A DNA stretch of 64,000 nucleotides from Phallusia mammillata (taxonomy: Eukaryota). Below are positions 1,391 through 54,420 of the stretch, piece by piece. The translations under genes were made by a program, and so were the position numbers. Where the stretch lies: contig OZ281494.1 of NCBI GenBank assembly GCA_965637545.1, positions 35,402,001 through 35,466,000 on the forward strand, given 5' to 3'. Each line of letters starts with the position of its first letter. Position 1 is the first letter of the stretch. The notes beneath the pieces were generated by a model. That model worked only from the letters and a program-made list of their open reading frames with translations, was not told the DNA's origin and ran no database searches.

Positions 1391-3573
1391 CTTTAGTTTC
1401 CTCAGTAGGGGGTTGTTTTCCTGTAGCATTGTTGTAATCTAAACAAACAAAATTATGAGTTAATTACAATAGATAAGTTAACTAAAACGTTGTATAATAT
1501 ATTTATGTGGGTCATATCAAAGAAGTAAACAAGATTTAAATCCGTTTTCGTTTAGACCAGTGGTTCCCAACCTGGGGTTCGCGGACCCCCAATGGGTCCG
1601 TGAGACAAACTATTTTTAGTACTATTACCCAACAGGACAATATTTTAAGTTTCCAAACCGTTTTTACAATCCTGCATTTGAGTAAAAACTGTTTATCATG
1701 CATTTGAGTCACAAAAACTTACTTTTTTGTGATTGTTACCGTAATCGTGACATCATACCACACACAAACAAAATATTTTATAGTTGTTGTGTCAAGTTTT
1801 GTACACGAGAAAATGAATCTTCTTTTTGAAGGTACTACTACAGTATAGAACTTCATTTTAAGGTTGAATAAAATGCTGGCCACAAAAGTGAAAGTATAAT
1901 AATGTATAATGCAAGCAACAAAAAAACATAGAATGAGGCAAAAGGGTAGTATTTCACATTAAAACGAAATTCCAATGACCCAAACTTGGTACAATATAAA
2001 ATGCATTCACTTTATTCATTTGTATTCTACTACTAAGCAATTTTGCCACTGTGAAGTCACTTATATTGTGGCACAACCTCAAAACTATTTGTAGTGAGCA
2101 TAAAAATGTAAAAATATTTTACTCTTTTGTGGCTGCCATAGTAACTACAATGTTACAAAGTCAAATAAACACATGACATGTTTTTCACCACTTAAGCATC
2201 TTGTAAAGGTTTATACAAATCAGGAATCATTTATGTAAATTGGTATGGATGGGCATTAGATAAGAAAGAGTAATATATAATGTGTAAATTTGGAGGGTTT
2301 TATCTATAACAAAAACAGCTGGCAAGTTTCATGCTATGCTAGCGAAACATTTGGGAGTCATTTACAAGGCTAGCTTTGTAAAATAATGCACACCCGTTAC
2401 ACAAACTGATATAAATTTTATTTACAGCATATGAAATGCCAGCAATTTTTCATGTTTTTTGATGTATTCTATTTGATGGTTTGGATAACTTGTGGGTAGA
2501 GGGTCAAAAAGTTCTATACTTATCACCTGTAAAAATGCGAAAATTGGCGAAACTTATCTTTTAAACTGTGTGGACAAACGCCAGGGAAAAATAGCCAACA
2601 AATGTATAAAGCATATCATGAATAAAATATACCAATAAAATGCAAAAAGGGACATGCTTTTTTATTCAAACGATTCAACACAGCCATTATCAATGATATG
2701 ATGGACCAGATAAATTACACCCATTTACAATTACCTGAGTCACATAAAAAATGATTAATTGGTTCTAAACAAGCGTCATTTAAATAGTGATAGTTTGATG
2801 ATGAACATATCACTAAGGATGGCATAAGCATTTGCTGAAACTTATAATAAAAGCATTTCACTTTTTACATCTGAAAGTACAAGACATGTGCTTACAGTTA
2901 TAAGTCTGATGCACATCTCCTTGAACTCCAACAACAGATTTCTCAACTTTTGCTTCTTTCATATCAATCTCCTGCTTTTTTCTGATGCTTTTGTCTGGGT
3001 ATAATAAAAATAAACAAAGTTAAAAGAAATGGTTGTTGTTCAACATCTAATTCTGTTTAATTGTTTGCCGTTGTTGCTTGCCAAATTTACCCTGTTTTTA
3101 TATCTCACGATTAATTCCTTACCTCCAACAAAATTCCTTACCTTCACCAGCTTGTATAGTAGTTGATGTTTGAGAAGTTGTCGGTGAGACTTCAGTAGAA
3201 ATTGGAACAGGAACATCCTGAGAATGACAATATTCTGGTAATTTTTATTACATTAAACACACTCGACTAATTTGGTAAAACCACAGTTAGTTATACAAGC
3301 CATTCAGCCACTGAATTATATTTCCATTTTTAAAACAAAAAGACATTTTTGTATGCCATTTCATTTCAACGTACTGTACAAGATATCTTTATACATTATG
3401 CCTATTAGTTCAAGTTTGTTTGATTTTACTGGTTCTGGTAAATTATTTTATTATTTTTATTCACTTAAAACCATTTAACAGCATTGGGTGCATTTTAATT
3501 CCCATAAGTAACAAATATGAGAGTCACCACTACAATTATGTACCTGAGGCTGTTTTGTCACTTTTTCTGACAT
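1391..3573 (-). CDS. NLR-like gene, paralogue 1: first four coding exons only (gene continues off the left edge)
   Basis: GT-AG exons 3573-3544 (MSEKVTKQPQ, phase 0), 3217-3142 (DVPVPISTEVSPTTSQTSTTIQAGE), 2994-2896 (DKSIRKKQEIDMKEAKVEKSVVGVQGDVHQTYN), 1438-1391 (YYNNATGKQPPTEETK). They join in frame, and each matches an exon of the complete NLR gene at 45876-44370. That a NACHT exon follows is inferred from the paralogue. Confidence 0.8.
1558..1720 (+). mobile_element. Truncated hAT-type MITE (left end only)
   Basis: Starts cagtggttcccaacc, the same TIR as the 5685 element. It is absent at the equivalent position of the paralogue (~44500). No right TIR found. Confidence 0.45.
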
Positions 3574-21400: not shown

Positions 21401-21830
21401 ACGCACCTTACACGACAAAGGCGGGCGGGTCTCCTAATTGCAAACCAGAGCTTTGTTCCGGACTGCGGTTGCACACTTTGTTGAAGCTGTACGTACCTAC
21501 CCACGTCTACAGGGGGTAGGTGCTTCAGCTTTGTACGTTATTCTTGTTTCAAATGTACTATTTCAAATGAAAAACGCTCAACACAAGTTGACCAGGCCAA
21601 TCCCGAATTATTGTAGTGTTTTTGTATATGTGAATGTCCTGACAAGCTTAGGATCTGCTAAGGTTAAGGACGGTGGCATTGGTTTAGTTTGTGTCGAACT
21701 AATCAATCTTGCGGCTTTTCACAGATCATAATGTCACCACAAACACTTTTTGACTGTGGAGCAAGCACAATTGCCTCGTCAACGCAACTTTTGCTACTGG
21801 CACATTGACATTACGTCGCCGTTTTTCCAA
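15420..21830. repeat. Recent ~6.4-kb tandem duplication, unit 1
   Basis: Constant offset ~6390 to unit 2 (15601 vs 21995; MITE 16840 vs 23233; 19021 vs ~25409). Later offsets shift with indels. Confidence 0.92.
16840..17356. mobile_element. hAT MITE, 517 bp, GAACCG-rich subterminal repeats
   Basis: Perfect 15-bp TIR cagggagtcgaaccg / cggttcgactccctg; perfect 8-bp TSD gctacaag. Confidence 0.95.
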
Positions 21831-24800: not shown

Positions 24801-27800
24801 CGTTTTTTTGCTCAAACTAACGCTTCGAAAATCGTTTAAATATCAAACTTAAAACCTTTATATGTGGGCTGTAAAAAAATCGTTTCAACAATCACTTTGT
24901 CATCGTAAGCGCAACACGTCAATCTACTTAAACCAAGCTGTATAAAGCAACGAAGGTGTTGTTTGTTTATGTTGCGTTTTTCAATTTGCACACATGCAGG
25001 CACGCAGACAAGGTTACCTCATTGCTATCTGAAAACATGTTACTTAAACAACTGCATTAATGCGCCATTTTTTTCCCTGAAAGCGGTAGCTCAGTAACAA
25101 TAAAAAATTTGCATCGTACCAACCAGAATTAAATAGCAACGAATTCATTATTTATTGCGCTTTCCGTTGTACAATTGTACCTAACATAAAACTGTTCAGA
25201 TCTTTTTTGTCAATTCGACTACTTCATAAAAAAGACAATTCGTTTCTGCTGTAACAGATGCATTGGAGTTGTCCCTTTTAATTTACCTAACAACTCACTT
25301 AACAGAATATCTGTGTTTACTGATTTACAAAACAATCTATAAGCGCTCTGTGGTACAGTTAAAAAACAAACCCAGCGCCTCACACAGACTTCTTGTATCT
25401 GTCTTACATCAACTGAAAAAGCTTTAACATCGACTACGATCTACTTTTTTCTCGCCACGTCGCCTCTACAAAAATAACCCCTAGCAAGTCACAAGCCTCG
25501 TTGGTTTGCAGGCATAAAGGCGAGGGCAACTTCTGTCACGTCACGCACCTGACACGTCAAAGTAGACAGGCTCCATAATTGAAAAACAGAGCTTTGTTCG
25601 TCTACGGACGTCTACAGAGGGTACGTGCTACTGGTTCGTACGTAATTTTTGTTTCAAATGCACTATTTCAAACTAAAAACGCTCAACACATTGACCAGTC
25701 CAAGCTTGAATTATTGTATTGTTTTTGTAGATGTGAAAGCGAGTTTTTTGTTTCACCATGCGGTTAACCCGTTAGTTACTCGGCACGTTACTGCGCCGTT
25801 CCGGGTTCAATACATTAGCGCGTCACAATGTTTTCGGAGAAGTAATAAACAAACGAACTGAAATCCAGTACACCTATGTGAAAATTCCAAGACTCTGTCC
25901 TGACAAGCTCAGAAGCAGCTAAGGTCAAGGACGGTGGCATTGGTTTAGTTTGTGTCAAACTAATTAATCTTGCGGATTTTCAGAGTTCATAGAGTCGCCA
26001 CAAACACTTTTTCACTGGGTTCGAACCGAACAGGCTCCGGGGAACGAGACCACTTGTGTATTTATGCAAATTTCTTTTTTAACACATGGTGATGCTGTAA
26101 CGCGTTGCTACATTTAGTTGAGAACATGTGCCTGGCGCTATGAAAAAAACGATCCTGACCGTGCACAGACGAAAAAACCTGATCGAGATTCTTCCCAGGG
26201 AGCGTCCTTGGTTCGAACCCCGTAAAAAAGTTTATGGCGACAAACGTGTTTATGATATGTGACGAGCCGCACGGTTATTTGGGACGGCACAAACTAAAAC
26301 CAATACCACCGTCCTTAACCTTCACAGCTCCTGAGCTTTTTAGGACAGAGTTGTGTATCACAAGTTAGTTGTTCTAAAACAAACAAATCAAACAAAAGGG
26401 GAACGTTTCAAACAATTCAGATTGTCTGTCAAGAATACGCATCGCACTTACATCACACACAGAACTTCACATAAACTAGTCACGTTCGGGTAAGGCACAA
26501 ATGTGAAGTAACTCACCTGACACGGAAAAAGCACGCATGTTTGGTAATTGGAAACGAGAGTTGAGTCTGCGTTACACACATCACCAAACGTTAACAAAAT
26601 ACCATTACTGAATCTGTACGTAACTGGCATATTGTCTAAGCTGCTTTATGGTTTACAGAGATTATTTTGCTGAAACATTGGGAAGGTTGCTTTTATAACC
26701 AATCTACATCAAATGCAAACAAAAAATATGTGTCGTTTTCGTTCCCAAATCTAAACCAAACTAAAACAAACGTTTGTTTAAGTGTTCTGAAAATACACCA
26801 TCTGAGATATTGTTTTTTTTTAAATGAGCAATATCAAATAACCACCAAGCAAAACTGCTACAAGCTTGGGTGATTGTATTGTGCTGCGTTCTTAAGCTGC
26901 GCTCAGATACTGAAAAAACGCGGCACATTTTGTACGAATTTTAGTTTTACCCTTTTTGCCTAGAGATTTTTCTGTGTCTTTTTCTGAGTAGTGAGTGTTT
27001 AGGAATTTATCGCGAATCCTGTCACATCTCTACATAGTTTCGGTGCGCCTACACAACTTAATTTTGAAACACGCTGTGACGTTATAACATTCTACTACAC
27101 TTTTTGGTCAATGACAAAAAAATATTACAAGTTTATCATGTTTTCCTTAGTCATCTCATCCCTGCAAACTAACAGATTGAAGTAAAGGCGAGTGCTGTCG
27201 CAGTAAATGTGAGATTTTCAATCACGTGCACAACCAGATGAAATGTCGTTTTAAGTTTCGGTTGACTGTGTAGCAAACTCAATTGTCCAAGAAACAAAAA
27301 TTGTTAAAATTTGAGACAAATTTTAGGAAGCTTTCTAAACATGCAGGCGCAGCGTTTTTCTCCAACTAAAGCTGTAAAATTTGTTCAAATATCAAACTAT
27401 GAAAGCATTTTAGGTGCCCTGTAAATATTCTTGTTTCAACAATCACTTTTGTCATCGTCAGCGCAACAAACGAAATCATATTAAACCAAGCTGTACGAAG
27501 CAACTATGGTGTGTTTTTACTTTGCACACACGTACACAAGCAAGCAGCCAAGGTTACCTCATTGCTAGCAAACAATATGCTACTGGAACATTGGCTTTAT
27601 TTCGCTATTTTTTCCCGAAAGTGGTTGCTCAGTACCAATAAAAAGATCCATCGTATCAACCAGAATGAAATAGCATTGAATTCATTATTTATTGTGCTTT
27701 CCTTTGTACAATTGTACCTAACATAAAACTGTTCAGATCTGTTTGTCAGTTAGACTATTTCATAAAAAAGATTCTTCGTTTCTGCTGAAACAGATGCCTG

Positions 27801-28483
27801 GGACTCGTCCCTTTGGATTTACCAGTATATCTGTGTTTGCTAGATTAGAAAACAATCGGTATGCGCTTCGTACTATTAGTTTAAAAACAAACCCAGCCCC
27901 TCACACAGACTAACTGTATGTGCCTTGCATTAACTCAAATAGCTGGTCTGCTTTCTTCTCCCTACGTCGCCTGACTTCTCCACAAATAACCCCCAGCAAA
28001 TCCGCAAGCATAGTTGGTCGGCGCGCAAAAAGGCGAGGGCAACTTCTGTCACGTCACGCACCTTACACGACAACGGCAGGCAGGCTCCGTAATTGGAAAC
28101 CAGAGCTTTGTTCCCGACTGCGGTTGCACACTTTGTTGAAACTGTACGTACCTACCCTCGTCTACAGAGGGTAGGTGCTTCAGCTTTGTACGTTATTCTT
28201 GTTTCAAATGTACTATTTCAAGTGGAAAACGCTCAACACAAGTTGACCAGGCCAATCCCGAATTATTGTAGAGTTTTTGTAGATGTGAATGTCCTGACAA
28301 GCTTAGGATCTGCTAAGGTTAAGAACGGTGGCATTGGTTTAGTTTGTGTCGAACTAATTAATCTTGCGGCTTTTCACAGATCATAGTGTCACCACAAACA
28401 CTTTTTGACTGTGGAGCAAGCACAATTGCCTCGTCAACGCAACTCGTGCTACTGGCACATTGACATTACGTCGCCGTTTTTCC
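21830..28483. repeat. Recent ~6.4-6.65-kb tandem duplication, unit 2
   Basis: Near-identical to 15420-21830. It lacks ~190 bp equivalent to 19660-19857 and carries ~500 bp (27305-27795) that is missing from unit 1 at ~21135. Confidence 0.92.
23233..23749. mobile_element. hAT MITE, duplicated copy of 16840-17356
   Basis: Same TIRs, same gctacaag TSD and same flanks: one insertion copied by the tandem duplication. Confidence 0.95.
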
Positions 28484-37371: not shown

Positions 37372-40300
37372 TTAGACCCAAACAGTCTCCCGCTGCAAAA
37401 AACAAAAAAACATTCAGCTAAAACCTTTCTGCACAACACAAATAGAATCACACTCAAAGTTCAGGCTTGCTGAGTGTGTGACGTCACCAGCCGATGACGT
37501 AATTACAATTGACGTCACTAATTTATTCACAGATGATTTTGTATTGAAAAATGTTTATCTATAAATCAAACAAACAAACTTACGGAACGTCCGAGTCTTG
37601 TCACTTCTCTGTATAAAATCTGTCTCCCATCATCAGAAATCCCGCATTTCGCCAGATACAACAACTTAACTTTCCTTAAACACCCGGAAACAATTTCGAC
37701 CCCGACATCTCCGAACTCGTTGACACTCAGATCAAGTCCTTCCATCTGCGCAAGATTTGATGATAATTTGTCGCAAATATTAACTGAACAAATAAATGTC
37801 ATGTGACGAGTGACGTAAGTGTGTCGTCATTAATTTAATTTCAGGTTTTGTAATTATTATTAAAAAATATTCTCATGAAACCAAACGCAATCATAACAAA
37901 CCCCGTGTTTCATTTTACTGATTCCTCCACAAATCAACCTCAGTGTGTCTGAGTTCAGGTTGCAGCGTCGAAGATACAGCCACTTAACATTTCGATTCAA
38001 CCTCGGGAGGATTTCAGCCAAGGCGTGCGCTGCACTCGATGATATGGGAGTGTTGTAGAAATCAAATTCCACAGGAAGATTACTTGCAAGAAAGTTCTTT
38101 TCATCATCTGAGCATTCTTGCAAGTCCGTCAACAGATCTAATAAAATGTAAAGAAAAAAATTCGATGGTTGGTATAAAAGGCAATAACTGGGCTTAAATT
38201 TAACAATTATGGTTTTTAAAAATATATTTATTATGACAAAAAAAATTGCAACCTAATGTATAAAGAAAAATTTATGACTGTTACCTATTTGCATTATTGC
38301 TGAACCAAAGTTAATTAGGTTTACTTTTATACGTTATACTGTATTAGTAAGTTTTAATTAACCTGTTTATTTGCACAACTTTTCACCTTGCCAACTTTGT
38401 AAAAGATTAAACAATCAGCGGTTAAAAATTACAAATTTAGCATCTAAACACTAGAGCAAAATTAATGCGTCCTTCCTTCAAAACTTTTAACGGCTTCTGA
38501 CTTACAAGTTTGCTTGGAAAGCAAAATATTCCACAAACACAATGTGATAGTTATGATATGAGGATTTATGATGTCGTAGGTAACAATGCAATTGTAGTAG
38601 CAATGTTATGGCAAAATTCCGCTAACGGTGCTAATGATTTTAATTGATTATTTTCAAGATTTAATTTAAACTTAACATAATATTTTTTTAGTTTGGCAAT
38701 AAATTATTGCACTGGTATAACATAGTTGTTTAATATCGCTGCCAAACTAAGGCTTTTCCATTTTAAATACCTGTCGTAAAGATCTGAAAAAAATATTATT
38801 GTTTGGCGTGTAGTCATATATTTGGTAACTATTACAAAAGGGTGTGTTAAATAATGACCTGTAAAAACACTTACCAATCAATTCATATCCACGCACTGCG
38901 GTTTTCATGTATTTGATGAGCTTTTTGCGAAACATCTCAACCTTGCCTGCAAAAACAGAAAGTTATCAAAGAAAATGAAAAACACGCACTTGTTTTAGTA
39001 ATAGTGTAGGAAAGACAGGAATACCGTAGTGTGCACGTATGGTGTCACAAACTGTGCTGCAGTAGGAGTACCTCAGAGTTCAAGCATAGTGTCACGAATT
39101 ATTGCAGAATGGGGCAGTTACTTGCTATTACATTTTCACACTTATTTTTCACCACTGACTTCGTTGTAACATTACATGTGCTATGTGCAATGATTGCATA
39201 ATTCATTTGCTGCCCAACATGACAAAGTTAAGTGCGTTTATTGTTGATTTTTATAGTATCTTGTAATCGTCTTTCGTTGTACTACCGTAAAATTACGTTT
39301 CATAATACTGGTCAGCTGCAACGTGTTTAGCCATCATCCACCATGTGTACCCTCAACTTTATTATGGTTTTGACGTTATTGTTATGTAATTGTTGTGCAA
39401 CTGTCCCACCAAGCAAAATAAATTCAATTTTTGTGGTAAGCTGGCAACTATGAAAACAAAGAGACAATCGGTCTAAAATGTTTTGGAAAAGTCTTTATAA
39501 AGCAGCTTCACTCCAGCTATTTTTTAAAGATTGTTTGGAGCAGGTATGTGGCTGATGCACTAGTTGAGATGACAAACCCATTTGTGAAGCCCAGTCTTTC
39601 AGGTTACGAAGTAATGTGCACTAACAATCACATACAATGCCAAATCAAAAGTTAACTGCTATAACATAACAATTACTACCAGATTTTCGGCACATGGGTG
39701 CACAATAAGAAACTTGTTCAGGCGAACTTTCAGGTGACTCATCTACAAAAAAGGGATATATTTATAATGTTGACATTTCACAAACACTACGGCCTATTTC
39801 AAATTTAATTAGTTACATAAGTAAAAAATATAGAGACATGCCATATGTTTGCTATAATTTAAAATTTATACATTGCCAGACAATTTGACCCAATTATAGG
39901 TGTTTAGCAGGTTAAATAGTGTGACTGTAGAGTTAAGCAATCAACATACCAATATAGCAGGCTGCAGAAAAAGTGCATATATATAATTAGGCAACGTTTT
40001 ACCATTTTTATTATTTTTTATTACAATATTCTACATGCACATAGGAAATCTTACTAGTTTGACATTAAAATATATGGTACTAAGGAGTGCAGATCAGAGT
40101 TTATTGACAAATGATTTATCCAATTACAGTTCGGACAACCCACCGTTTTTGTCTCCGAGTAAAAGACCGCATAAAAATCTACGAACCATTGACCAATGGC
40201 CTCCTTGAACCACAACAGCAATGATTTTTTTGAATTCTTTATCCGGCATAAACTGGTAGATGTACCTCGCAGCAAACATCTCCTGTAACGTTTGATGTGA

Positions 40301-43300
40301 AAAATAAAATAGTTGGTCACCATCAAATAGTCGTTGAGGCGGAATGTCAAAATTTCCAGCAAAGGCTATTATGATATCTTGGACATCAGCTGCATCAAAA
40401 CCCTCAAGTTTTTCTTTGTTGAAAACAACTGTTTTTTCCCCCATGCCATCATATGCCATTTTACCAATGGGTTCCCATAAATTAATAATATCTAAGTTAC
40501 TTCGTGCATGTTTGGAGCGGTTTAGATACTTTAACACAGTTTGAAAAACCTCTGTAAGTGTTTTAACCTTGTTTGGACCCTTATGGAAAAAAGCAAAAAT
40601 AATAAATTGCAGTAACAAAGGATTATGGCAAAGACCAAACAGCTGTGGGGCTTTGGTTGATACCATTTCCCACAATTCATCTGCTCTGTCCCCTGCCAAA
40701 GCATAGAACAGCTTTTCCATGTCTTCAGTTAAAAGGTCATCAACATGAATGGTGGCATCTGGACGAAACTCTGATGGGATTTTAAGAATTTTATGAGGAC
40801 GTGATGTAAACAACAGCAAAGAATCTTTGAAAAACTTCTTACAACAAAGATTGGCTACTAGCTGATCAATTGGCACGGGTGTTTCATAAGCTAGATTAGT
40901 AGGTTTCAAGTTTTCAAGTGACATTGAAGTTTGGTCATACCCATCAAATACAAAAACACACTTATCTTCGTTTTCCCTCATCCACTGAAATGCATTTTCT
41001 TTTGTTTCGTCATTCAACCCAGGACAAAGAAAGTCAACAAAAAGTTGTTTGCATGTTACAGGTTGCTTATAGTTTAGATTCATGAACCGAAGAAGAAACA
41101 TGACAGATTGATTTTCTTGACTTTTTGCCAATTTTTTAGAAAGAGTAGTTTTTCCTGAACCAGGTGGACCAACTAATGTGACAAACTTTTTGTGTGTGAT
41201 TATATGTAATAAAGTATCAAACGAAACTGGGTGTTTATTTAATTGAGAGGCAAATTTCTGTTTTGTGGATGGTATGAATTTCTCCTTCTTCACAGGCACC
41301 TCTCCTTTATATGCCTCATACACATGCATTCCTGGATGTACGTCAGGTAGTTGGTTTGGTTTTAATGTCTTATCATAAAGCACCACACTTTCTCCCAAGC
41401 TCCTCATATGCTTCTCCTGGTGCTTGTTGATGGCAGCAACTGAAATTAAAAGCAGGTGATAAGCAAAATAAGAAAAATAGAATAAAACTAGAAGGGTGGC
41501 TCAGCACATATTGCCATTGCACATACACTACGTACACTCTATTTAACAGGTCCCATATCAGTCACCATCTTTTATAGCCTTAGTTGTTTCTGCAAGCAGA
41601 AACTCATGGGTCCCCCACACATGCAAAGTTGCAAATAATGCATTTTGCAAAAAAAACTCTGAAAAATTTTGGTGCTATTTGTTTAAACAAGACAATAAAA
41701 AGTCTGAAGACATAATCATGCTATATGAGGTACAACTATTCAAGTCACATTCAATTTGGCAATTGTTTGCAAAATTTAACCATTGCAGGGGTTAATGGGG
41801 TAAATGGTGGGGCTGCAGAACGAAACTCAACAATCAACACCTTAAAATAGAATATTATAAACAATTTCTAAATTTCATGACATTGTTTAAAAAGTTAACC
41901 CTTTTTAAGGGGCTAATGGGGTAACTGATCGGACTACAGGGTAAAACGTCAAATTCGACACCTAAAAATGCCATATTGCACAAACTGTCAATATTTCATG
42001 CAACATGGTCAATGTTTAAAAATCACACCCATTTAGGGGTTACTGGGGTAAAGGTGGGGCTCACAGTGTAAAAAAGATCAATGGATGATGTATTTTATAA
42101 ACCGTCTATATTTCATTAAATTTAGACATTGTTTAAAAAATTCACTCATTTTAGGGGGCCAGTAGGGTAAATATATATTGGGGCTGCAGGATGAAACACA
42201 ACAATCAACACCTAATTATGGCAAACTGAACAAACTGTCAATATTTTTTGCAATTCAGACTTTGTTTAAAAAGTTAACCGTTTTTAGGGGGCCAGTTGGG
42301 TAAATATTGGGGCCACAGGGCGAAACACAACAATCGACACCTAATTATGGCAAAATGAACAAACTATCAAAATTTCATCCAATTCGGACATTTTTTAAAA
42401 ATCACCCTTTTTGGGGGGATGGTGGGGTAAATATTGGGGCTGCAGGGTGAAACACAACAATCGACACCTAATTATGGCACAAAGAACAAACTGTCCAAAT
42501 TTCATCCAATTCGGACATCGTTTAAAATTTTACCCATTTTAGGGGGCTGGTGGGGTAAATATTGGGGCTGCAGGGTGAAACACAACAATCGACACCTAAT
42601 TATGGCACAAAGAACAAACCGTCCAAATTTCATCCCATTCGGACACTGTTTAAAATTTTACCCATTTTAGGGGGCTGGTGGGGTAAATACTGGGGCTGCA
42701 GGGTGAAACACAACAATCGACACCTAATTATGGCACAAAGAACAAACTGTCCAAATTTCATCCAATTCGGACATTGTTCAAAATTTTACCCATTTTAGGG
42801 GGCTGGTGGGGTAAATACTGGGGTGATTAAGTCAAACAAACCAAAAGGCACATCTACATGACCATATCTTCAATCTGTGAAAGTTTCATCCAAATCCAAC
42901 AAAGATTTGTTGCCAAAAGTGCATGGACAAACTTCACGGCGGAAAAAAGAAAAAAAAAGAAAAAAAAAAAAACATAGTGAAATCAAGATGCGTCCCCTTC
43001 AAGGAAGGGGACCCATAATTTAACCATTTTTTCTAGACCAAAGTGTGAGTAAATATCAGCTATATGCAGAAAAAAAGATAAAAATGCAAAAAACAATGCG
43101 GGTTCCATTCAGAAAAGGTTAAAATTCTAAAAATTTTCCTTAACAATAAAATATCCTAAATATTGAAAAGCAGCATTCCAATATTTCTATTTAAAAACAC
43201 ATATTGTGTAAAGCTGGGAACAAATTGTTAATTTGACCCCACTATTGTTTTACATTATGAGATCACATTCAGATTTTCTACTTTAGTTTGCATTTCTAAC

Positions 43301-45876
43301 ATTTTTCAAGTTCGAACTAAAATAAAGAAACCAAAAACAAGTAAAGACAAATCTCGTTAATCACACACCTAATTTGACAAGCTTATTTTTGACACAGTGA
43401 GTTTTGGTAGTGAAGGGTTGTAGGAGTAAAAAACACAGATAGGCGTAAAAAAATGAAAATTCGCTGTTCTACAAATGTGACTTGTTCACTACAATCCCAT
43501 TCACATTTGTTTAATTAACCAGGACCTACAGTTCCTGAGTTACAAGTGGAAGACTTGTACAAATTGCAAGAAGTGAAAAATAGTGGGAAGTATATTGTTA
43601 AAACATGAGAGTGAAAATAAAAATGCAGAAAAAACGAGAAAAACCTGCTTCTTATCATGTCCGAGCACAAAGTCACACTTTTTAACTGCTGCTAAAATAA
43701 TGCAATTGTTTACTTGGGTTTCAAGAGAGAATATCAGTACAACAAGCCATAGATTGCTTACAACTGTGGACATATTCAAAAGTTCTTTTTTAAAGCAATT
43801 CCATTTACTTTATTTTATTCTTTATTTAGTCTGACAATTATTAGTTGTTCCATAACAAAGAGTGGAATTAATAACTTATCGGTTTAGCAGCAAAAGTGCA
43901 TAAAAAACAGCTTTTTTCTGACTAAATCTTTGATGACCCAATTGTAAATTATGTCATTAAACTTGCTAACTCCCTTTACCTCTGGCTTCATTGGCTTGTG
44001 CTTTGGCTCTGTCTTCAATATCTAAGTGTACAAACAACATGATTTTTAGTATAAAACAATTTTTTTTTACAAACATACTAAAAACGAGGTTTCCTATCTA
44101 GGCTGGTAAAGCAGGTTTGCTAAAGATTGTTTGTTTTATATTGTCTGCTTTGAGTGTGCCATCGCTCACCAAGTGCTTTTTGGTGTATCAAAAATCATAA
44201 ACCTGCACAAATGGGTGCATGGAAGCACTGGGTATAAGTATAAGTTAGGGTGGCAGCATAGCCATTTATTGATGACCGCCACCCCAAACCTGGTCAAATA
44301 CCAAATACCTGGTTAAGGGTTGCTTTTAAGCCCGAAACAAAATAGCAAAAACACAGAAATACCGTTTACCTTTTGTTTCCTTGGTAGGGGTTTGCTTTTC
44401 AGGGGCATTGTAATCTGAACAAATCGAATTCGGTATTAATTAGAATAGATAAGTTCACTAAAACAATGTAATGTTTTTTGTGAGGGCCATGTCAAAGTAG
44501 TGAACAAAATTATAATTTGCTTTTGTTTAAACTGTGTAAAAATGGTAATATCCCACATTAGCATGAAATATTTATTTTTATTCTACTACTAAGCAATTTT
44601 GTCACTTTAAAGTCACCAATATTGCGGCACACCCTCCAAACTATATGTAGTCAGCATTAGCAAACAGCATAAAATAATTATAATTTTAAAAATTTTTTAA
44701 AAATGTTTTACTCATTTGTGGCTGACATGGAAACTACAGGATCACTAAGTCAGATAAACACATGACATGTTTTTCACTACATCATCATCTGTTAAATTTT
44801 TATCCAATTTATGTAAACAGGTAAGGATGAGCTGTAGAAAAGAAAGAGAGTAATATATAGTGTATGAATTCAGAGGTTTTAACCATAATGACAACCGCTG
44901 GCAAGTTTTATGTTGTGCTAGCAAAACATTTGGAAGTCATTTACAAGGCTAGCTTGAAGCATTTTCGTTAAATGATGCACTCCCTTTACACAAACTGATA
45001 TCAATTTTATTACAGCATACGAAAAGCCAGCAATTTTTCCTTGATGTTTTTTGATGTATTTTATTTGATGGTTTGGGTAGCATGAGGGGTAGAGGGTCAA
45101 AAGTTCAATACTTATAACCTGTAAAATGTGGAAAATTACAAGTATAATCTTTTAAACTGTGTGGACAACCCCAGGAAAAAATAGCCAACAAATATATAGA
45201 AGATAGCATGCTTACAATAATTAGTCTGATGTACATCTCCTTGAACTCCAACCACAGATTTCTCAACTTTTGTGCTTGTCATTTTAATCTCCTGCTTCTT
45301 TTTAACACTTTGGTCTGGGTACAATAAAAATAAATCATGTTCAGCAATGGTAGTTGTTTACCATCCAATGCTGTTGGATTGTTTACCGTTGTTGCTTACA
45401 AAGTTCGCCCTGTTTTTATATCTCACTTTTTTCATCTTATTGAGCAATATTACACATACACCAAAATTCCTTACCTGCACCAGCTTGTATAGTAGTTAAT
45501 GTTTGAGAAGTTGTCGGTGAGATTTTAGTGGAAATTGGAACATCCTGAGAATAACAATATTCTGGTAATTTTTTTTTACAATAAACACACCCGACTAATT
45601 TGGTAAAACCAAAGTTAGTTACACAAGCCATTCAGCCACTTTTGTGTGCTATTTGATGCAATTTCATTTCAACGTCCTGTACAAGATATCTTTATACTTA
45701 TGCCTATTAATTCAAGTTTGTTTGATTTTACTGGTCGTGGTAAATTATTTTATTATTTTTATTCACTTAAAACCATTTAACAGCATTGGGAGCATATCAA
45801 TTTCACATAAGTAACACATATGAGAGTCACCATTGCACTTATGTACCTGAGGCTTTTTTGTTACTTTTTCTGACAT
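37372..45876 (-). CDS. NACHT-LRR (NLR-like) protein, 10 coding exons, 690 aa, no N-terminal death fold
   Basis: Exons 45876-45847, 45544-45475, 45314-45216, 44414-44370, 44021-43980, 41439-40144, 38946-38875, 38137-37902, 37745-37584, 37392-37372. All introns are GT-AG and phase-compatible; total 2073 nt = 691 codons including TAA. The small exons and the last exon are predictions. Confidence 0.8.
37584..38137 (-). CDS. Ribonuclease-inhibitor-like LRR exons (38137-37902, 37745-37584)
   Basis: VKWLYLRRCNLNSDTLRLIC, LDLSVNEFGDVGVEIVSGCL and VKLLYLAKCGISDDGRQIL fit LxxLxLxxNxL/CxI RI-type repeats. Donor TCC|GTAAGT at 37584. Confidence 0.88.
40144..41439 (-). CDS. NACHT NTPase exon (1296 nt, phase 1-1)
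   Basis: Walker A GPPGSGKTT (41170-41144), Walker B CVFVFDGYDQ, LLLFTSRP, LCHNPLLL, winged-helix FYFSHQTLQEMFAARYI, WSMVRRFLCGLL. Acceptor tttaatttcag|, donor G|GTGGGT. Confidence 0.95.
41486..43019 (+). mobile_element. Helentron/HINE-like non-autonomous element with internal minisatellite
   Basis: Starts aactagaaggg... and ends with an A-tract, a perfect 9-bp hairpin gtccccttc-aag-gaaggggac (42992-43012) and cataat. No TSD. Family assignment is inferred from this architecture. Confidence 0.6.
41745..42825 (+). repeat. Minisatellite, ~8.5 units of 121-128 bp
   Basis: ggggctgcag-like anchors at 41810, 41931, 42057, 42181, 42309, 42437, 42565, 42693. The last units are near-identical at exactly 128 bp. 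Confidence 0.93.
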
Positions 45877-46229
45877 TGTCGAAAAAGGAAACCAATTAGT
45901 TCCGTATAAAGCTTGATGGAAGTGGAAAGATGTTGGTTTGGTTGGAAACTGCTTGACGCTTAGTTTTAGTCAGACTTAAAAAAGTTAAAAAGTCTTACAG
46001 CCTATACTCCTGCTAGCAAAAAAAATTCAATCTTACTTCAAAACTTTAATTACCCTTGAATTTAACGATTTCATTGAGTCCCTATCTCTTTTATAATATT
46101 ATTGTTTCTGCAATATTTCAAACTGTCTAAATTTCAAAAATTTCAGACAAAGTTTACAAATGTCACCACTACAGGCATTTAGAGCAACCATTAATGGTTC
46201 TAATATCATCAGGCTGATGTTATTTTGGA

Positions 46230-46405
46230 AAAAACACCGTTTGAATCAAATCAAATGTCACATGTACATGACTATATCAACTATCTGTGAAAGTTTCGTC
46301 CAAATCCATCAAACATTTCATGGCCAGGAAAAACACAAAAACAAAAACAAAAAACAAATTAGAATCAAAATGTGTCCCCTTTCAAAAAAGGGAGGGGCTC
46401 ATAGT
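46230..46405 (+). mobile_element. 3' end of Helentron/HINE-like element in the first intron of paralogue 2
   Basis: cacatgtacatgac...tgtgaaagtttcgtccaaatcc... followed by an A-rich tract and the hairpin ccctttcaaaaaaggg, as at 42850-43015. Confidence 0.55.
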
Positions 46406-46983
46406 TTATACATTCAGTGTACTGAAAAAAGAACAAAATTGGATTACACACTAGTTAAAATGATAACCTTTTTACAAACTGTCAGTATTTCGCCACATGG
46501 ATGACAGTTATAAGGCCAGGCAACAAACTTTCTCGAAAAAAATGATGTCATTTTCACTATGTTAAGTAACTTGCTAAACGTAAGTTGCAAAAACTGATAA
46601 AAACTGATACAGGTTTAAAATTCAGGTTTCTTAAATACATACAGCTCAAGCATACTTCATTTATTGTGGCAAATATTTACATGACCTTAGTTCTGCTGCC
46701 ACAACAAAATCCTAAGTGACAAACAACTTGGACTGCAGAAGGTTAAAAACAATTTTGTTATTATGTATTAACATTTAGTGGAACAAAAAACACAAACCAA
46801 AAGTAGATTTTAAAACACAGTGAACTTTAAACAGTATAAAATGTTGTGATATACTAAAGTGGAAAATTATTTGTTTATATTTACAATACAACTTTTTAGA
46901 GCGACCTACTTATCACAAAAAACAACAACTCTTAGTTACAAACATACTGATAATTCTTTATTTAGACAGGGCATTTCATGTAC

Positions 46984-47286
46984 CTTGCATAACCGTTTTT
47001 TGATGCCATCTAATCAGAAATAAACGTCAATTTGGCAAACTCACCCTGCGCAATAATCAAGTAAAGCAAGATGGATGGCAGCCTATAATACATTTTTAAT
47101 GTTCCGGCACCCCTCATGTAGATGACGGACAAACAGCTACTATGATTACGAAGTTAAAAAATTGCTCTTCTGTTCTGTCGTCGGCCGCCGTCAACAATCC
47201 GCCAAACAGGTGGACCAAACGTCTGACTGTCCTGCCTGATTTTCGCCGCAGTGTTTCACAAACTATTTTTCTGACTGGCCGTAACC
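46984..47286 (-). other. Putative non-coding first exon/promoter block of paralogue 2
   Basis: Donor CAAG|GTACAT at 46984; acceptor for the ATG exon at 46009; homologous to 5376-5684. Confidence 0.5.
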
Positions 47287-47864
47287 CAATGGTTCCCAAC
47301 CGCATTTTACCCAAAAAATACTGAATATTTCGAGGCGTTGCGCAATAACAAAAATTAAAGCTCTAGCAATGTATGTCAAGTGGTTGACTTTAACTGACAA
47401 TGATTGTTGTGTTGTAACTTTGTTTCTTTACTGTAATAATCGGTCCCACCAACGTTACCCCCCCAGTCGAGTTTACCCACAATGCGCCAACCTCACCTTC
47501 TTGTGAGCCCCCGTCACCTAACGCCTTTTAATACGGTGTAGCTGCAGCGCGTTCAACCATGATCCACCAATTGTGCCCTTCATTATTTTGCGCTCCATAA
47601 CGTCTTAACGTTGCGCAGCTATTTCCGGCTTGGTGATTGTTTTAGTGCTATTGTGTCGCTATGTTCACCAAGCGAAATAAACTCATCTCATCTCATCTCA
47701 TCGCAGAGATGTTCTCTTGTTACACCGAAATACAGAAAAATATCGTTATAAACAAAATAACGAAATAAAGAATTTGCGAGAACGAATAACATTATTTCGT
47801 TCCGTATAAAACTCTGCTTGGTGGTGGTAGTGGTACGCGTCCGCAGAAAGGTTGGGAATCACTG
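47287..47864. mobile_element. hAT element, same insertion as 5685-7467 (pre-duplication), 578 bp
   Basis: TIRs caatggttcccaacc / ggttgggaatcactg; TSD ccgtaacc / ccctaacc; same flanks as the copy-1 element. Confidence 0.88.
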
Positions 47865-48038
47865 CCCTAACCCAATCGACGATCACCCAAGTCAGGCCTT
47901 CTGTGTTGTATTCAGGCCTTCTTTTTCGAAGTCCGCAATATTGGAATGTTGGACATGTCAAAACTACGGGACGCCGGCACAGACGGAGATTGTACATTGT
48001 AGACTTGTAGATAGTACCAGAGCCGACAACAATGAAAG

Positions 48039-49434
48039 TTGGTCAGATTAGATGTTGGACTTTACGTCAACTCAAGTGAAAAATGTGGCGACCTTAAATA
48101 TCGACTGCTTACAGATTCATTCAAGCCTCAGATGACATATGATTTCAAGAGAGATTTACCTGGTAATGGTAAGAGAAGCCTTGGACATGCTTGGTTAGCA
48201 CAGTATTCTCCTTGGTTTGCTTACTCACCAAAACTTAGAGGTGGCGTTTGTGTACATTGTATTTTGTTTCCTCAAGTTGTACATAGCGGCTATCAAGGTG
48301 CATTTATAACGTGTGCTTTAAAATGTATAAAGATTTTCACGAAAGCGTCCGAAAACATGTTTCATCGGCATGGCACATAGATTACACAAGAGATGCAAAT
48401 CACTTTCTGACAGTTCAGGCAAACCCGAACAGAGAGATTGTATGTCAGTTAGATTCTTCTGTTAACCGTGAAATTGAAGAAAGAAAAAAAAAAACTATAC
48501 TATATGCTTTCTCTTATATTGTTTTGTGGGACAAATGATTTCGAGGTAAGAAAGACGAAACTGGAAATTTGCAACAACTTTTCGCTTTTCGTATTGAGGC
48601 TGGTGATGTTATTTAAAAATAAACATTTTGAAACTTTTGCAAAAAATGCTCGATATAAATCGATCTAGCCGCAAAGCATAATTTTTTCTAAAGAAGTTTA
48701 AAGAAATACTTTTGTAAAGCCTGTCAATGATTCTGCTGGTAAATCGGTTTTAGCTGATGAAACTTCAGATATATCTGGTGCTGAGCAGTTATCAACTGGT
48801 GTGCGTTGTTTGGATCCTTCCAGTCCGAAGATTATTCGTCAAGAGTTTCTTGGATTTACACCACTAAGTGACGTAATCGCCTCAGGAATTTCAAATTCAC
48901 GATTAAATCGATGCAAAGAATTCGGTTTAAATCTTGAAAAACTTTTCGGCCAGGGGTATGACGGCTGCTTTGCAATGGCTGGGGTAGAGAATAGAGTGCA
49001 ATCAAAAATTCAAAGCCTTCCTCCAAAAGCAGCTTTTGTTCATGTTCCTCAAATCGCCTGAACCTAGTAGTCAACGATCTCAACACTGTTGCAACAGTTC
49101 GAAATAACGTGGGTACAATTAAGTCAATTATCACGTTCTTTCGACGAAGCCCCCCAAAAAGATCAATGGTTCCGAATATTTCTCTCTTGTCTGACACACG
49201 CTGGACTAGCAAATATAAGAGCATCAGAACATTCGCTGGTAATTTTGAAAAAAAAAGACATCCAGTTAGAAGTCCTCTCAACAACAGGAACTGGACAGCA
49301 AACTGCACATCAGTTATTTTGTTCTTCCACCTCGCCGACTTTTTTGTTTTGCCTAAGTGTCATATCATTTTACTCAGCCCTTCTTGAACCAATTGCTCAA
49401 GCTCTTCAAGCAGTTCAACTAGACCTCCGACAGG
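48039..49434 (+). pseudogene. hAT transposase fossil (THAP12/PRKRIR- or ZMYM1-like)
   Basis: Frameshifted pieces: SPWFAYSPKLRGGVCVHCILF (zinc-finger-like), LADETSDISGAEQLSTGVRCLD...EFLGF, GQGYDGCFAMAG, PKAAFVH, LSDTRWTSK. Confidence 0.82.
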
Positions 49435-49875
49435 CAGACATGGGGTCGAATACACGCGTCCTGTATTCGAATACTTTACGAATACCTGCATGACTGTATT
49501 CGAATTCATGGTAATTTTTGAGAGAGAGCAATTCGAATGGTATTCGAACAAAACGAGTCAAGTATTTGTATTCATGAATTGTTGACCAAACTACAACGAC
49601 AAGTAATTCGAATGCTATTCAAATAAACCAAGGCATGTATTCGTATTCATGACTTCTACGCACTTTTTAACGTTCGACAATTCGAACTGTATTCGAATAA
49701 TGCGGGTCAAGTATTCGTATTCACGAATTGTTTCGTAATGTTAAGGTGGCAGCAATTCGAATTGCATTCGAAAAGAACGTATCAAGTATTAGTATTCATG
49801 AACAGTTGACCAAAAAACAACAACGTGTAATTCGAATACTATTCGAATAAACCCCAAGCGTGTATCCGCCCATGG
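49435..49875. mobile_element. MITE with ~5 internal ~75-bp TTCGAA-rich tandem repeats, interrupting the transposase fossil
   Basis: Ends cagacatggggtcgaatac / gtatccgcccatgg; unit aattcgaa...attcgaa...caagtatt.gtattcatgaa at ~49530, 49605, 49680, 49755, 49830. Confidence 0.6.
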
Positions 49876-50084
49876 TTATGAGTGGTACCTCAACAGCCTG
49901 ATCTACAAACTGTTTTTTGTAAGGTATTCGTGTCTGAATTGACACTTTTGACCGATTGCGCGTCATTGTGTGCTGGCGGGCGGCGGCAATATGTTATGAA
50001 TTGAGTGTCGTAACCGCTCGCTCATGCGCAGATAAACGTTAAGGCTTTGTGAAAACGGCATGCTTTGCAGAGTCTGATTATGGC

Positions 50085-50423
50085 TTTCGCGTTTAGTGTA
50101 CTTTCTTATGCGCGATTATTTGTGAAGAATAGCCTTTTGAACTCTTCGACTGATACCTAGAAGCTTTCAGTCAGTTTCAAAGCCAACTGTTTCTTTATTA
50201 AAACGCAAAGGTCCACACCGAACAGTCTTCAAAATAGAATGACTTGCGCCACAAAAACAAGTCAAAAAACTGCAAGTCGCAGAACAAAACGTGCGCCTCA
50301 GGAAAGACACCGGCAGTCACAGGCCAGTTGCCATCAGCCACTTGTGCCGTAACCACGCACTACCAATTTGCGTACACACACGATGCAAACAGGCACACAC
50401 ACGATGTAAATAAATTTATGACA
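50085..50423 (-). repeat. 3' LTR (339 bp)
   Basis: About 14 substitutions and 2 indels versus 54480-54797 (hand count, ~95% identity); terminus TGTCAT... on the minus strand. Confidence 0.92.
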
Positions 50424-50433
50424 ATACCCCCCA
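50424..50433 (-). other. Polypurine tract
   Basis: tggggggtat immediately before the 3' LTR on the minus strand. Confidence 0.6.
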
Positions 50434-50568
50434 ACTAAGAGAAATCTTCTAGATTTTTTTTCTTTGCGTAAACAAATTTTCACGACAACAAATCACATCA
50501 CAAAAACCAAGAAGTATTAGTAAAATTAAACGAACACCAACGGATGACAACATCACATAATGTGCCCA

Positions 50569-51900
50569 TTATTCCAGTCTGCTCATAAAATCTGCACCAA
50601 CATTATCCGAACCTTTGATACATTTAAATTTTATGCGATAACTCAAAAAAAACATAGCCCATCGCATAATACGATCATTGGTAAACTTGGCGCTTTCCAA
50701 ATAGATTAAAGGTTGGTGATCGGTCTGCAACACGAACTCATTGCCATACAAGCATACACCGTATTTACGTACAGCCCATATAATAGCTAAGCACTCTTTT
50801 TCGATAGTAGAATAGTTGTGCTCAGCACTACACAATTTTTTGCTGGCATAACTGACAGGAAACAATTTCCCGTCATGTTCTTGCAATAACACAGCACCAA
50901 GTCCCTTGTCCGACGCATCTGTTCGCAGCACAAACGTTTTACACATATCTGGTAGGTGCAAAATGGGCGCGTTTGTCAAGCTCGTTTTCAGTGCTTGGAA
51001 AGCTACTTCTTGTGCATCACCCCAAATTACCACGTTAGGTTGTCCTTTCTTTGTCAAGTCGGTTAATGGAGATGTAATCGCCGCATAATTCGGCATAAAA
51101 TCTCGATAACACCCTGTAAGTCCAATGAACGACCTGACGTCCTTCTTTGTCAACGGGCGTTTTGCATTCTGAATTTTCCTGACGTTGTCCTTCTGAAGAC
51201 CAATCACGTCCTGTTCAATGTTATGTCCGAGAAAATCAACACTGCTTGCACCAATGATACATTTTGATGGTTGGATTGTCACCTTCGCATCTTTTAGACG
51301 ACGTAGCAAAATTTTCAAGGCAATAACATGTTCTTTCCATGTCTTCGTATGGATGATGATGTCATCAATATAATTCTCAAAACAGTCCATTCCAAGCAGT
51401 TATATTGTCATGTCTCGAACGAATGTAGCAGCAGAGTTCATCATACCAAACGGCATTTTAAGAAACTCGTGATTCCCTTGTGTGGTCACGAACGCCGTCT
51501 TCTCTATATCTTCCTCAGCTACCGGAACCTTTTGACAAGTCAATTTTTGTAAAAAAAACTTGTCACGTGCGAGTTTCTGAAAAACATCTGAAGCTGCTGT
51601 CATTGACTCCGGATTAAATACAGTCACTTTGTTTAACTTTCGATAAACTATTCATACTTGGTTTGTGCCATCCTTTTTAGCGACGACCACAACTGGTGAG
51701 GCGTAAGCGGAGTTTGATCTACGAATAACACCCAACCTCAGCATCTCGTCGATGTCCTTCTTCAAGCTTTCCCGCACTTTGTAGGGTACTGTACACGGCC
51801 TTGACCGAACAGGTCGATTGTCCATGAGTGTCACTCGATGTTGAACGAAATCCATGCTTCCAGGTATATCGTTAAAGACGTTAAAAGGTATATCGTTGCT
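50569..51900 (-). pseudogene. Reverse transcriptase + RNase H (three frames)
   Basis: PYKV..LKKDIDEMLRLGVIRRSNSAYASPVVVVAKKDG; KTAFVT..GNHEFLKMPFGMMNSAATF; YIDD; RH motifs TDAS, EKECLAIIWA, TDHQPL. Confidence 0.95.
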
Positions 51901-52032
51901 ATATTGTTTGACTAGTGCAACTGCCTCGTCTCTCTCAGATTCTGTGAGATTTTCACCGTTCCTTACATCCTCTACATTTTCTTCAGCTACACATGGATAC
52001 AGCTCTAAGAGATCATTGTCATCATGTTCTTC

Positions 52033-53300
52033 TCAGGGAGAAATTGTTGAAAAACAAGCAGAAGCATCTTTCGTCACGTCGCGTGTGCGACGGTTACTTG
52101 CGATGTACTGTTTTAGTAAATTGATATGAAAGGTTTTGGTTTTTCCTCCCATATCGAGAACATAATCACTTAACCCAATTCTCTTTTGCACTACAAACGT
52201 CCCCTTCCACTGCATTAATAGCTTATTATTGTCTGTCGGCAACAACACAAGTACTTGATCATCTTCATTAAGACTACGGGGCTTAGACTTTTTGCCAAAG
52301 TGTTTCTTGTAACACGTCTGTGAATTAGACAGTTCCTCCTGTACAATCTTGATAGTTTCTTCCAAGCGCTCTTTTAAATCAAATACATATCTGTAGCTGC
52401 ATCTTACATCTGGCTCTGTTGTGGTGTTTGTCCACATTTCTTTCAAAATCGCCATAGGGTCGCGAACACTTCTACCATAAAGCAACTCAAATGGCGAAAA
52501 CCCAGTTGACTCTTGTGGCACTTCGCGGTATGCGAAAAGAAGAGCATTAATGTATCGATTCCACTGCCGTGGCTGGTCACAGCACAAGCGCTTGAGCATT
52601 CTTTTAAAAGTTCCGTTAAATTTCTCAACCAAGCCGTTGCACATTGGGTGACATGGTGTTGTCGCTAGATGTCCTACTTTCAGAAGTCTCTCCACCTCTT
52701 TCATACAGTCAGATATAAACTGCGTGCCCATATTACTTAGATTCTCTTCTGGAATCCCAAGGCGACTGTATGTCGACTAGGGTTTCGGCCACTGCTTCAG
52801 TTGTTATGTTCTTTAGAGGAATAGCTTCAGGATAAGGCGTTGCGTAGTCTACAAAGGTAAGAACAAAACTATGCCCATCTTCACTAGGTGGGTAAATTGG
52901 GCCAATTAAATCAACCGCAACACGCTTAAACGGTACATCCATTAATGGCATCTTTTCCAAAGGTACCCGTGAAACACTTCCTTTGTGAACAGTTCTCCGG
53001 CATATATCACAAGACCTGCAAAATCGCTTGACGTCGCCATTAATTCCTGGCCAGTAAAAACTCCAAAGAATCTTATCAAGAGTTTTTTTAGTTCCCATGT
53101 GACCACCCATTATAAACTCATGTGCTGTTTCCATTATCTTCTGGCGCAGCTTGACTGGCGCAACAAGCTGGTAAACACACTTTCCTCTGTTAACTTTTGG
53201 ATATCGGAATTCTCGATATAACAACCCGTTGTCAGTTATGAAACAGGTAATTTGCTCGCCTTTGACCCGCTCTTCTTTCATGATCCACAGAGATTTGATA
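52033..53300 (-). pseudogene. Integrase (HHCC + rve + GPY/F-like), frameshifted
   Basis: HEFIMGGHMG...CRSCDIC; VAVDLIGP; ENLSNMGTQF (second catalytic D appears as N); NGLVEKFNGTFK; KLLMQWKGTF. Confidence 0.93.
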
Positions 53301-53354
53301 GAAACATCTGCCTTCTGAGCGGCTTCGAAACCTTCTTTATCCATAATGGACCAT

Positions 53355-54420
53355 TCACCAAGATTTTGAACCTCCAAAGGACTTCGTTTTTTTAAAAAAA
53401 GATTGTGCTCGCGTCTTAACAGCGCAACCCACCTTCCACATTTGATATAGATTGTCAGGACTTCTGGCGCCTGGAACATTTTCAATAATTAAATCGTGCA
53501 AGGTATTTGGCAAACACAGCGCATCTACTTCTCCTTTGAAGTAAGGCGAATCCACAGATATTCTTGCCACTTCCTCTTCGATTGTCCTCGAATCTAAAAG
53601 CGTAACGATGCGTGATTCCTCTTTAAGCTTGGGGCAAAACTTTCCCTGTGTCCGTACTCCATGCAATTAAAACATTGCGCGTTTGTGTCAAAGTTCAACT
53701 GGCCATCGTTCGGCAGCAAATATTTATTGCAGTTACCAGCCAAGCTCTTGTTATGCGCGAAAAAAACTGATCTGCCACAGTAGCCAACGCGTCTAATTGC
53801 AAATAGTTATGTAAACGAACTAGGAACTGTGTCGAATTTTCGACTGACTTTGGTTAAGCACCACGGAATTTAGACCTGTAACCGTCCTCGGTTAGACCGT
53901 ATCTGTCTAAAAGTGCTTTCTTGAGAACATCGTAGTTGACTGCGTCAGCATCAGATAATCTCGAATAAACTTCCAGCGCTCTACCTGTAAGAAGCGCACT
54001 GAGAGAGGTTGCCCAGTCGTTCCTGTCCCATTTGTTACTAGAAGCAAATCTTTCGTACCTGAGAATGTAACTATCGAGCTCATCTTGACCGTCCACAAAC
54101 GGTGGCAGCTTCGGCACCTTTGCATGACTTGTTGTTGCGCCCACCTTAGCAGACTTTACCTCCGCAAGTTGTAAATCCATTTTCTTAAGCTCCATTCTGT
54201 GTTCTCGCTCAATTTTTGTCTCGGCCATTCGCCGTTCTTCAAGCTTGCGTGTTTCATTAATTTTAATCTCTTCGAGTCTTCTTGCTTCACGTTCGTTTTC
54301 AGGCCGCTCTTTGCGTTCGTCCCGATCACGTAACTGCTGGTCATTGACCCACTTGACCAATGCTTCCCCTGAAAGTCCCATTGCCTTTCCAGTTTCACTC
54401 AAAGCTTGAACTCTTGACAT
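53355..54420 (-). pseudogene. Gag with broken zinc knuckle, plus the C-terminal half of the protease
   Basis: KVPKLPPFVDGQDELDSYILRYERFA..W..DWATSLSALLTGRALEVY..L...YDVLKKALLDRYGLTEDGYRSKFR; CFNCMEYGH/..KFCPK knuckle (53674-53630, frameshifted); VARISVDSPYFKGEVDALCL..LHDLII. No D(S/T)G motif remains. Confidence 0.88.

Follow-up and report, generated by a model that had tools for sequence, protein, structure and literature searches.

Vertebrate receptors of the NOD2/NLRP3 type combine an N-terminal CARD or PYD with a body of NACHT, helical, and winged-helix modules and leucine-rich repeats (LRRs). For most invertebrate NLR expansions, it is an open question how receptors lacking CARD or PYD relay their signal. 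In fungi and bacteria, NLRs with short N-terminal amyloid motifs serve as a precedent (bioRxiv 10.1101/2020.01.06.895854); these motifs (HRAM/HET-s, sigma, and PP in fungi, BASS1-10 in bacteria) lie in the disordered N-terminus of a NACHT/NB-ARC receptor, where they occupy the position of the effector domain, they are common to divergent receptors, and the same motif is found on a separate, usually adjacent effector. A further motif of this kind is the RHIM, known from RIPK1, RIPK3, ZBP1, and TRIF, from insects (cRHIM), and from RHIM-NACHT proteins of amphioxus (PMC4262963). Its core tetrad reads (V/I)-Q-(V/I/L/C)-G (PMC9444067), and RHIM, PP, and BASS3 have a G-phi-Q-phi-G signature in common (bioRxiv 10.1101/2020.01.06.895854, Dyrka 2020 preprint). 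In tunicates, the closest living relatives of vertebrates, Kajava et al. detected no RHIMs (PMC4262963). The present analysis concerns a 64-kb window (the whole stretch of 64,000 nucleotides from contig OZ281494.1 of the ascidian Phallusia mammillata), whose minus strand carries, from ~45.9 to 37.6 kb, one ascidian NACHT-LRR gene, here denoted gene A. In place of CARD or PYD, its product has an ~82-residue N-terminal tail that lacks a death fold and that, judging from a close relative, is predicted to be disordered. Comparison with distant relatives locates the deeply conserved element of this tail in a short stretch, h-H-[Q/E]-T-N-[I/Y], that spans an exon junction, and not in the RHIM-looking VQG.

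Relatives of gene A were sought by an exhaustive HMMER search with its NACHT exon. The best match is the P. mammillata protein P0001 (69% identity; 68% over residues 114-543), followed by other Phallusia proteins and then by proteins from Clavelina, Ciona, and Styela clava; by these matches, gene A belongs among tunicate NLRs. The gene is composed of the following parts:

45847..45876, minus strand: exon 1, coding part; ATG, reading MSEKVTKKPQ, with donor CAG/gtacat and an end in phase 0
45475..45544, minus strand: exon 2; 70 nucleotides, phase 0 to 1, DVPISTKISPTTSQTLTTIQAGA, with canonical splice sites
45216..45314, minus strand: exon 3, the motif exon; 99 nucleotides, phase 1-1, DQSVKKKQEIKMTSTKVEKSVVGVQGDVHQTNY
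45223..45270, minus strand: 16-codon motif within exon 3; KVEKSVVGVQGDVHQT, the same protein in gene A and its paralogue B
44370..44414, minus strand: exon 4; 45 nucleotides, phase 1-1, YYNAPEKQTPTKETK, or (Y)YNAPEKQTPTKETK when written with its junction residue
40144..41439, minus strand: NACHT exon; pre-NACHT helix, P-loop GPPGSGKT, helical and winged-helix modules
38875..38946, minus strand: short linker exon with splice sites; KVEMFRKKLIKYMKTAVRGYELI, matching P0001 residues 562-582
37569..38174, minus strand: LRR exons; two open stretches with approximate borders and a weak Pfam LRR_6 match

The order of a P-loop NACHT, helical and winged-helix modules, and LRRs is that of an NLR. The NACHT exon is bordered by an acceptor at 41439, after which it opens with two bases, and a donor at 40144; the open frame at 41407-40124 matches Pfam NACHT (E=5.1e-18) and, weakly, NLRC4_HD2 and NOD2_WH, and the LRR stretches are 49% identical to P0001 residues 571-762. 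Exon 1 is identical to that of paralogue B at 28 of 30 nucleotides and also aligns with the N-terminus of P0001, while the exon 2 peptide is 83% identical to P0001 residues 10-32. Exon 3 is framed by an acceptor (...acccag/) with a good polypyrimidine tract and by the donor /gtaag. Its frame 3 translation, (D)QSVKKKQEIKMTSTKVEKSVVGVQGDVHQTNY, agrees with the frame of the neighboring exons, and the phases are consistent throughout, with exon 2 ending in phase 1 and exons 3 and 4 both being phase 1-1. Exon 4 completes the conserved core, VHQTNY/YYN, and the spliced tail, encoded by four small exons, reads ...VVGVQGDVHQTNY/YYNAPEKQTPTKETK/V-AAINK....

This exon structure is in line with assembled contigs from four sequencing runs, guessed to be RNA, that were placed on positions 41000-46999 at 90% likeness, a threshold at which some may derive from paralogues. 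Contig depth, counted in bins of 200 nucleotides, is confined to the bins with exons 1-3 and is thin over exon 4, with zero in the intervening intron bins. One contig of run X2 joins 45216 to 44414, skipping 801 nucleotides bounded by GT..AG on the minus strand. Therefore, the exon 3 donor (45216/45215) is used, and the next exon is 44414-44370 rather than the NACHT exon. P0001 shows the same order as gene A, i.e. the peptides of exons 1, 2, and 3, then extra residues, then the NACHT exon; the CAB entries of P. mammillata are presumably transcript-derived. The 99-nucleotide exon proposed in the first-pass annotation is thus real, given its canonical splice sites, its phase 1-1, the exon-only contig coverage, and the exon order of P0001. 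The same annotation had exon 3 spliced straight to the NACHT exon and a tail of ~96 amino acids before it; with the 45-nucleotide exon 4 in between, the tail amounts to 81 residues plus a split junction codon. Exons 3 and 4 are symmetrical, so that the motif could be spliced in or out with the reading frame intact; the frame is also retained when exon 4 is skipped.

Two contig features, namely a loose end inside exon 2 at 45482 and, in run X5, a non-canonical joint 45525->45930, clash with the exon borders and probably stem from transcripts of other paralogues that were matched at 90% likeness. An in-frame ATG inside exon 3 (45280-45282; 2960-2962 in paralogue B) is kept in both copies, in P0001, and in Ciona, where the annotated isoform X4 (P0159) begins exactly at this codon. 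It is a possible alternative start, from which the motif would lie ~6-20 residues from the N-terminus, as do the amyloid motifs of fungal NLRs.

The first-pass annotation had described an N-terminus without a death fold, and structural prediction, domain search, and tail length all agree with this description. In an AlphaFold2 model of P0001 built on a 32-sequence alignment (mean predicted local distance difference test, pLDDT, 77), residues 1-103 have a pLDDT below 50 and no secondary structure, and a confident fold sets in at residue 110, the start of the NACHT exon; this model matches the structures of NOD2 and NLRP3 with E down to 7e-28 (Foldseek). Pfam models of CARD, PYD, DD, and DED have no match at E<=10 in 35 tail segments, nor has any other Pfam domain, and P0001 residues 30-115 are equally free of Pfam domains. 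The tail of ~82 residues is rich in Ser, Thr, Pro, Lys, and Gln. Exon 4 contributes only 15 residues to it, and a six-helix bundle of ~90 residues is not found upstream of NACHT.

A recent paralogue, gene B, occupies the first 7.5 kb of the window with its 5' part, and its NACHT exon falls outside. Positions 43349-47920 align to 2-7523 at 73-89% identity, and the following exons of gene B are recognized:

3544..3573, minus strand: exon 1; MSEKVTKQPQ
3142..3217, minus strand: exon 2, with an in-frame insertion of 6 nucleotides
2896..2994, minus strand: exon 3; DKSIRKKQEIDMKEAKVEKSVVGVQGDVHQTYN
1391..1438, minus strand: exon 4; 48 nucleotides, phase 1-1, (Y)YNNATGKQPPTEETK

A recheck confirms what had been noticed first about the two copies: the 16 residues KVEKSVVGVQGDVHQT are common to both, their codons differ by two synonymous substitutions (GTG/GTT and GTA/GTG), and 7 of the 15 residues before the motif differ. 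In codon counts, the proportion of nonsynonymous differences (pN) is 0 in the motif (0/36.7 sites) and that of synonymous differences (pS) is 2/11.3 (0.18). In the first 14 codons of exon 3 (45271-45312 vs 2953-2992), pN is 0.28 and pS 0.50, which exceeds the divergence of the introns (10-20%); a small hot spot of change thus lies directly beside the invariant core. The exon 3 peptide of P0001 is nearer to that of gene B than to that of gene A. Taken by themselves, the two copies only hint at purifying selection on the motif and at rapid divergence of the stretch that precedes it. Their conservation is weak evidence because the two copies are recent and their introns are 80-90% identical, as is the noncoding sequence around the exons, where 10.5% of the 48-column windows have at most two mismatches. 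Agreement of the two copies as a proof of selection was rejected on these grounds.

Conservation beyond chance emerges only when sequences from outside the pair, P0001 and P0059, are added. The 11-mer VVGVQGDVHQT is invariant in P0001 despite an overall identity of 69%. P0059, a 1079-residue NLR encoded on a 3.8-kb Logan contig (probably an mRNA), is far more distant; its NACHT shares only 27% identity with that of gene A, and among named proteins it comes closest to Styela clava NLRs, at 44%. Near its N-terminus, it reads IIHQTNYYYNQG and contains the 8-mer HQTNYYYN, identical to the stretch across the exon 3/exon 4 junction of gene A even though 7 of its 8 codons carry synonymous differences. 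When the gene A tail was shuffled 300 times, the longest word in common with other tails had 4-6 residues, and none reached 7. In the Ciona orthologue LOC100175027, the corresponding region, GIEMDVQ.GE.V.RITAQDVH(I/F)HNYQ..NAVP, lies entirely in a single exon. It has EI(K/E)M ... DVHxxNY ... NA.P in common with gene A, and VGVQG is not kept.

The same residues stand out when larger sets of tails are compared. Motif discovery in 30 non-redundant tails of tunicate NLRs yields [N/D/V]-[I/V]-[H/N/D]-x-[T/S]-N-[I/V/Y]-x with a log-likelihood of 135, vs 93-102 in shuffled tails, and DVHQTNYY of gene A has the second-best score among the 30. In 58 related tails, 16 occurrences of N[VIL]H (3.4 expected) and 14 of [VIL]H[VILFMQ][HT] (1.7 expected) are counted; none of 500 shuffles reaches either count. 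By its sequence, the core exemplifies a motif that is enriched in ascidian NLR tails, roughly [N/D]-[V/I]-H-x-[T/S/H]-N-[I/Y], and the comparisons indicate that it is under purifying selection across ascidians and common to distant NLR subfamilies. The first-pass annotation had centered the conserved motif on VQG; deep conservation lies instead in DVHxxNY/HQTNYYYN, across an exon junction that had gone unseen. The 45-nucleotide exon 4, the junction-spanning HQTNYYYN core, and its presence across ascidian orders are new here, and full-text literature searching found no account of a conserved N-terminal motif in tunicate NLRs.

P0001 appears to contain a second 33-residue unit (residues 67-99, after 34-66) behind the motif exon. 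The start of this unit (QQSV...SNIGNQTIYQQNN) resembles that of exon 3 (DQSV...), and its end is likewise rich in Asn, Gln, and Tyr. Possibly, the exon was duplicated in tandem and one copy diverged, giving two pseudo-repeats. A corresponding second copy of exon 3 in gene A (as QQSV...NIGNQTIYQQNN of P0001) was considered and discarded, as the 45215-44415 intron holds no trace of it.

The core, VVGVQGDVHQTNYYYN, is formed by exons 3 and 4 and covers residues 53-69 of the tail. It has no charged residues and abounds in beta-branched, amide, and aromatic ones; its flanks are rich in Lys/Glu and Pro. An uncharged Val/Asn/Gln/Tyr core between charged and proline gatekeeper flanks is the usual layout of an aggregation-prone segment. 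The tail may substitute for the missing death fold as the signaling end of the receptor. Oligomerization of NACHT after activation would cluster the tails, the uncharged cores would then associate by beta-sheet stacking (amyloid-like or by beta-augmentation), and the stacked assembly might recruit a downstream partner protein. Signaling of the tunicate NLR tail motif by proximity-induced beta-association of clustered tails is the reading tentatively adopted here because it requires the least, a real possibility held with less than even confidence. A wider version, in which ascidian NLRs as a group have replaced death folds by exon-encoded beta-motifs (h-H-[Q/E]-T-N-[I/Y]) that act as prion-like nucleators, with divergent subfamilies converging on one effector, is doubtful; if true, amyloid-type NLR signaling would exist in a chordate lineage reported to be without RHIMs.

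Signaling through beta-association can be set against the described systems. With the fungal and bacterial amyloid motifs, gene A shares the short motif in the disordered N-terminus of a NACHT receptor, which replaces the effector domain, and the occurrence in divergent receptors. In contrast to those families, the gene A motif is split over two exons, lies ~50 residues from the first Met (~6 from the internal Met), shows no sequence likeness to them, and has no counterpart on a separate effector in the searches made. With vertebrate NLRs of the NOD2/NLRP3 type, gene A has the receptor body in common, as seen in Pfam and in the Foldseek matches of the P0001 model, and differs in its tail.

Several observations weigh against beta-association. 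Amyloid-like stacking of the core is a reasonable conjecture drawn from composition and analogy. The AlphaFold2 model of a longer Styela tail array is a low-confidence long helix (mean pLDDT 57) and not a beta-solenoid, and autocorrelation shows no clear period; this model says little on the notion that the Styela arrays form beta-solenoids of motif units, which was dropped. Pfam models of RHIM, HET-s, and sigma have no match in the 35 tail segments. The motif is not the sole constrained part of the tail either, as the exon 2 peptide is about as conserved between gene A and P0001. Furthermore, in P0011 and P0022, a similar His/Tyr-rich tail motif is followed by a TIR-like domain, recognized by eye, and then by NACHT; therefore, the tail need not be the effector module in these proteins.

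To the same side belongs the search for a partner. A six-frame regular-expression search over the window finds the motif only in the two NLR exon copies, in accordance with the earlier statement that no partner effector is visible there. Around the Ciona orthologue, within 10 kb on either side, the motif is found only in the NLR's own exon, and the neighboring Sec3, TPR, and ARM-repeat genes do not carry it. Comparison of the P0001 tail region with proteins of 428-1361 and 165-525 amino acids, and of the 62-residue open frame around exon 3 with the protein database, gave no other carrier; these searches need near-identical runs of residues and excluded the species' own proteome, so that they are weak evidence of absence genome-wide. 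The ESM Atlas, queried by features and by structure, yielded no carrier either. The non-NLR proteins expected to share the motif thus did not come to light in these insensitive database searches, in the ESM Atlas, or at the Ciona locus.

The main rival to beta-association, itself rather unlikely, supposes that the disordered tail carries a short linear motif of the ordinary kind, which a folded domain of a partner reads one-to-one, without beta-stacking; adaptors, kinases, E3 ligases, and SH2-type readers of a phosphorylated Tyr-x-Asn stretch would be examples of such partners. Such a docking site accords with the predicted disorder of the tail, with a conserved element of only 8-11 residues, with the lack of a matching motif on another protein, and with the lack of RHIM or HET-s likeness. 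However, no known docking consensus is recognized, Tyr-x-Asn is kept neither in Ciona nor in P0001, and the composition of core and flanks would be more typical of aggregation-prone segments. Even as an ordinary docking site, the motif would still mark where these receptors signal from. Its conservation in several ascidian orders and NLR subfamilies makes it a mutable handle and a bait for partner discovery, and the motif peptide allows a test of whether NLR signaling of the fungal/bacterial amyloid type also exists in chordates.

A regulatory role of the tail, by autoinhibitory fold-back on NACHT/LRR or as a pH-, metal-, or phosphorylation-sensitive switch rich in His and Tyr, is judged quite improbable. 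Alternating His residues are enriched in related tails, and the symmetrical exons would permit isoforms with and without the motif, but AlphaFold2 packs the tail against nothing, and the window's own motif keeps one His only. Still less probable is a functionless spacer whose identity in genes A and B results from recent duplication or gene conversion. The high intron identity of the two copies and the share of equally conserved noncoding windows would suit a spacer; the matches across species largely refute it, as the 11-mer is kept in P0001, HQTNYYYN persists in P0059 under synonymous change of nearly every codon, DVHxHNY is kept in Ciona, and pN drops to 0 within the motif.

With RHIMs, gene A shares the innate-immune context in animals and a disordered region that harbors a short beta-prone motif devoid of charge, at the position usually held by a six-helix death fold. 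It differs in the residues that are conserved, H-Q/E-T-N-Y/I and not VQG, and in the core itself: gene A reads G-V-Q-G-D, without a hydrophobic residue after Q, and fits neither the tetrad nor the G-phi-Q-phi-G signature. None of the 58 related NLR tails contains the tetrad (0.7 expected). With the two exon peptides as queries, Pfam returns nothing at E<=10, although HMMER filters may hide very weak matches, and phmmer with P0001 residues 40-115 retrieves no solved RHIM chain from the PDB, with chance peptidase matches (E ~0.3) only. The caution of the first-pass annotation that the motif is not a canonical RHIM is borne out, and the RHIM likeness it had drawn fails in every test made here, including the absence of VGVQG from the Ciona orthologue. 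A divergent RHIM feeding a necroptosis-like RIPK pathway via hetero-amyloid, suggested by the loose resemblance of G-V-Q-G-D...N-Y to the VQVG core region of human RIPK3 (PMC9444067) and by the RHIM-NACHT proteins of amphioxus, is exceedingly improbable in view of these mismatches and of the report by Kajava et al. on tunicates (PMC4262963).

Apart from the NLR genes, the window consists of repeats and a broken long terminal repeat (LTR) retroelement. A tandem duplication of ~6.4 kb (~15400-22000 vs 21800-28400) shows 93-98% identity, with shorter related copies close by and no convincing coding content among its open frames of at least 95 amino acids. The intron between exon 4 and the NACHT exon contains a 128-nucleotide tandem repeat (5.6 copies, 88% matches, 42099-42823; wider extent 41750-43100), at which contigs of all four runs stack to depths of hundreds with many rearranged joints; it therefore belongs to an abundant, probably transcribed repeat family. 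Just upstream of gene A, the minus strand at 48856-54420 harbors the remnant of a Ty3/gypsy-type LTR retroelement, with reverse transcriptase and RNase H, an integrase zinc-binding domain, and an integrase core with SH3, broken by stops or frameshifts into several open frames.

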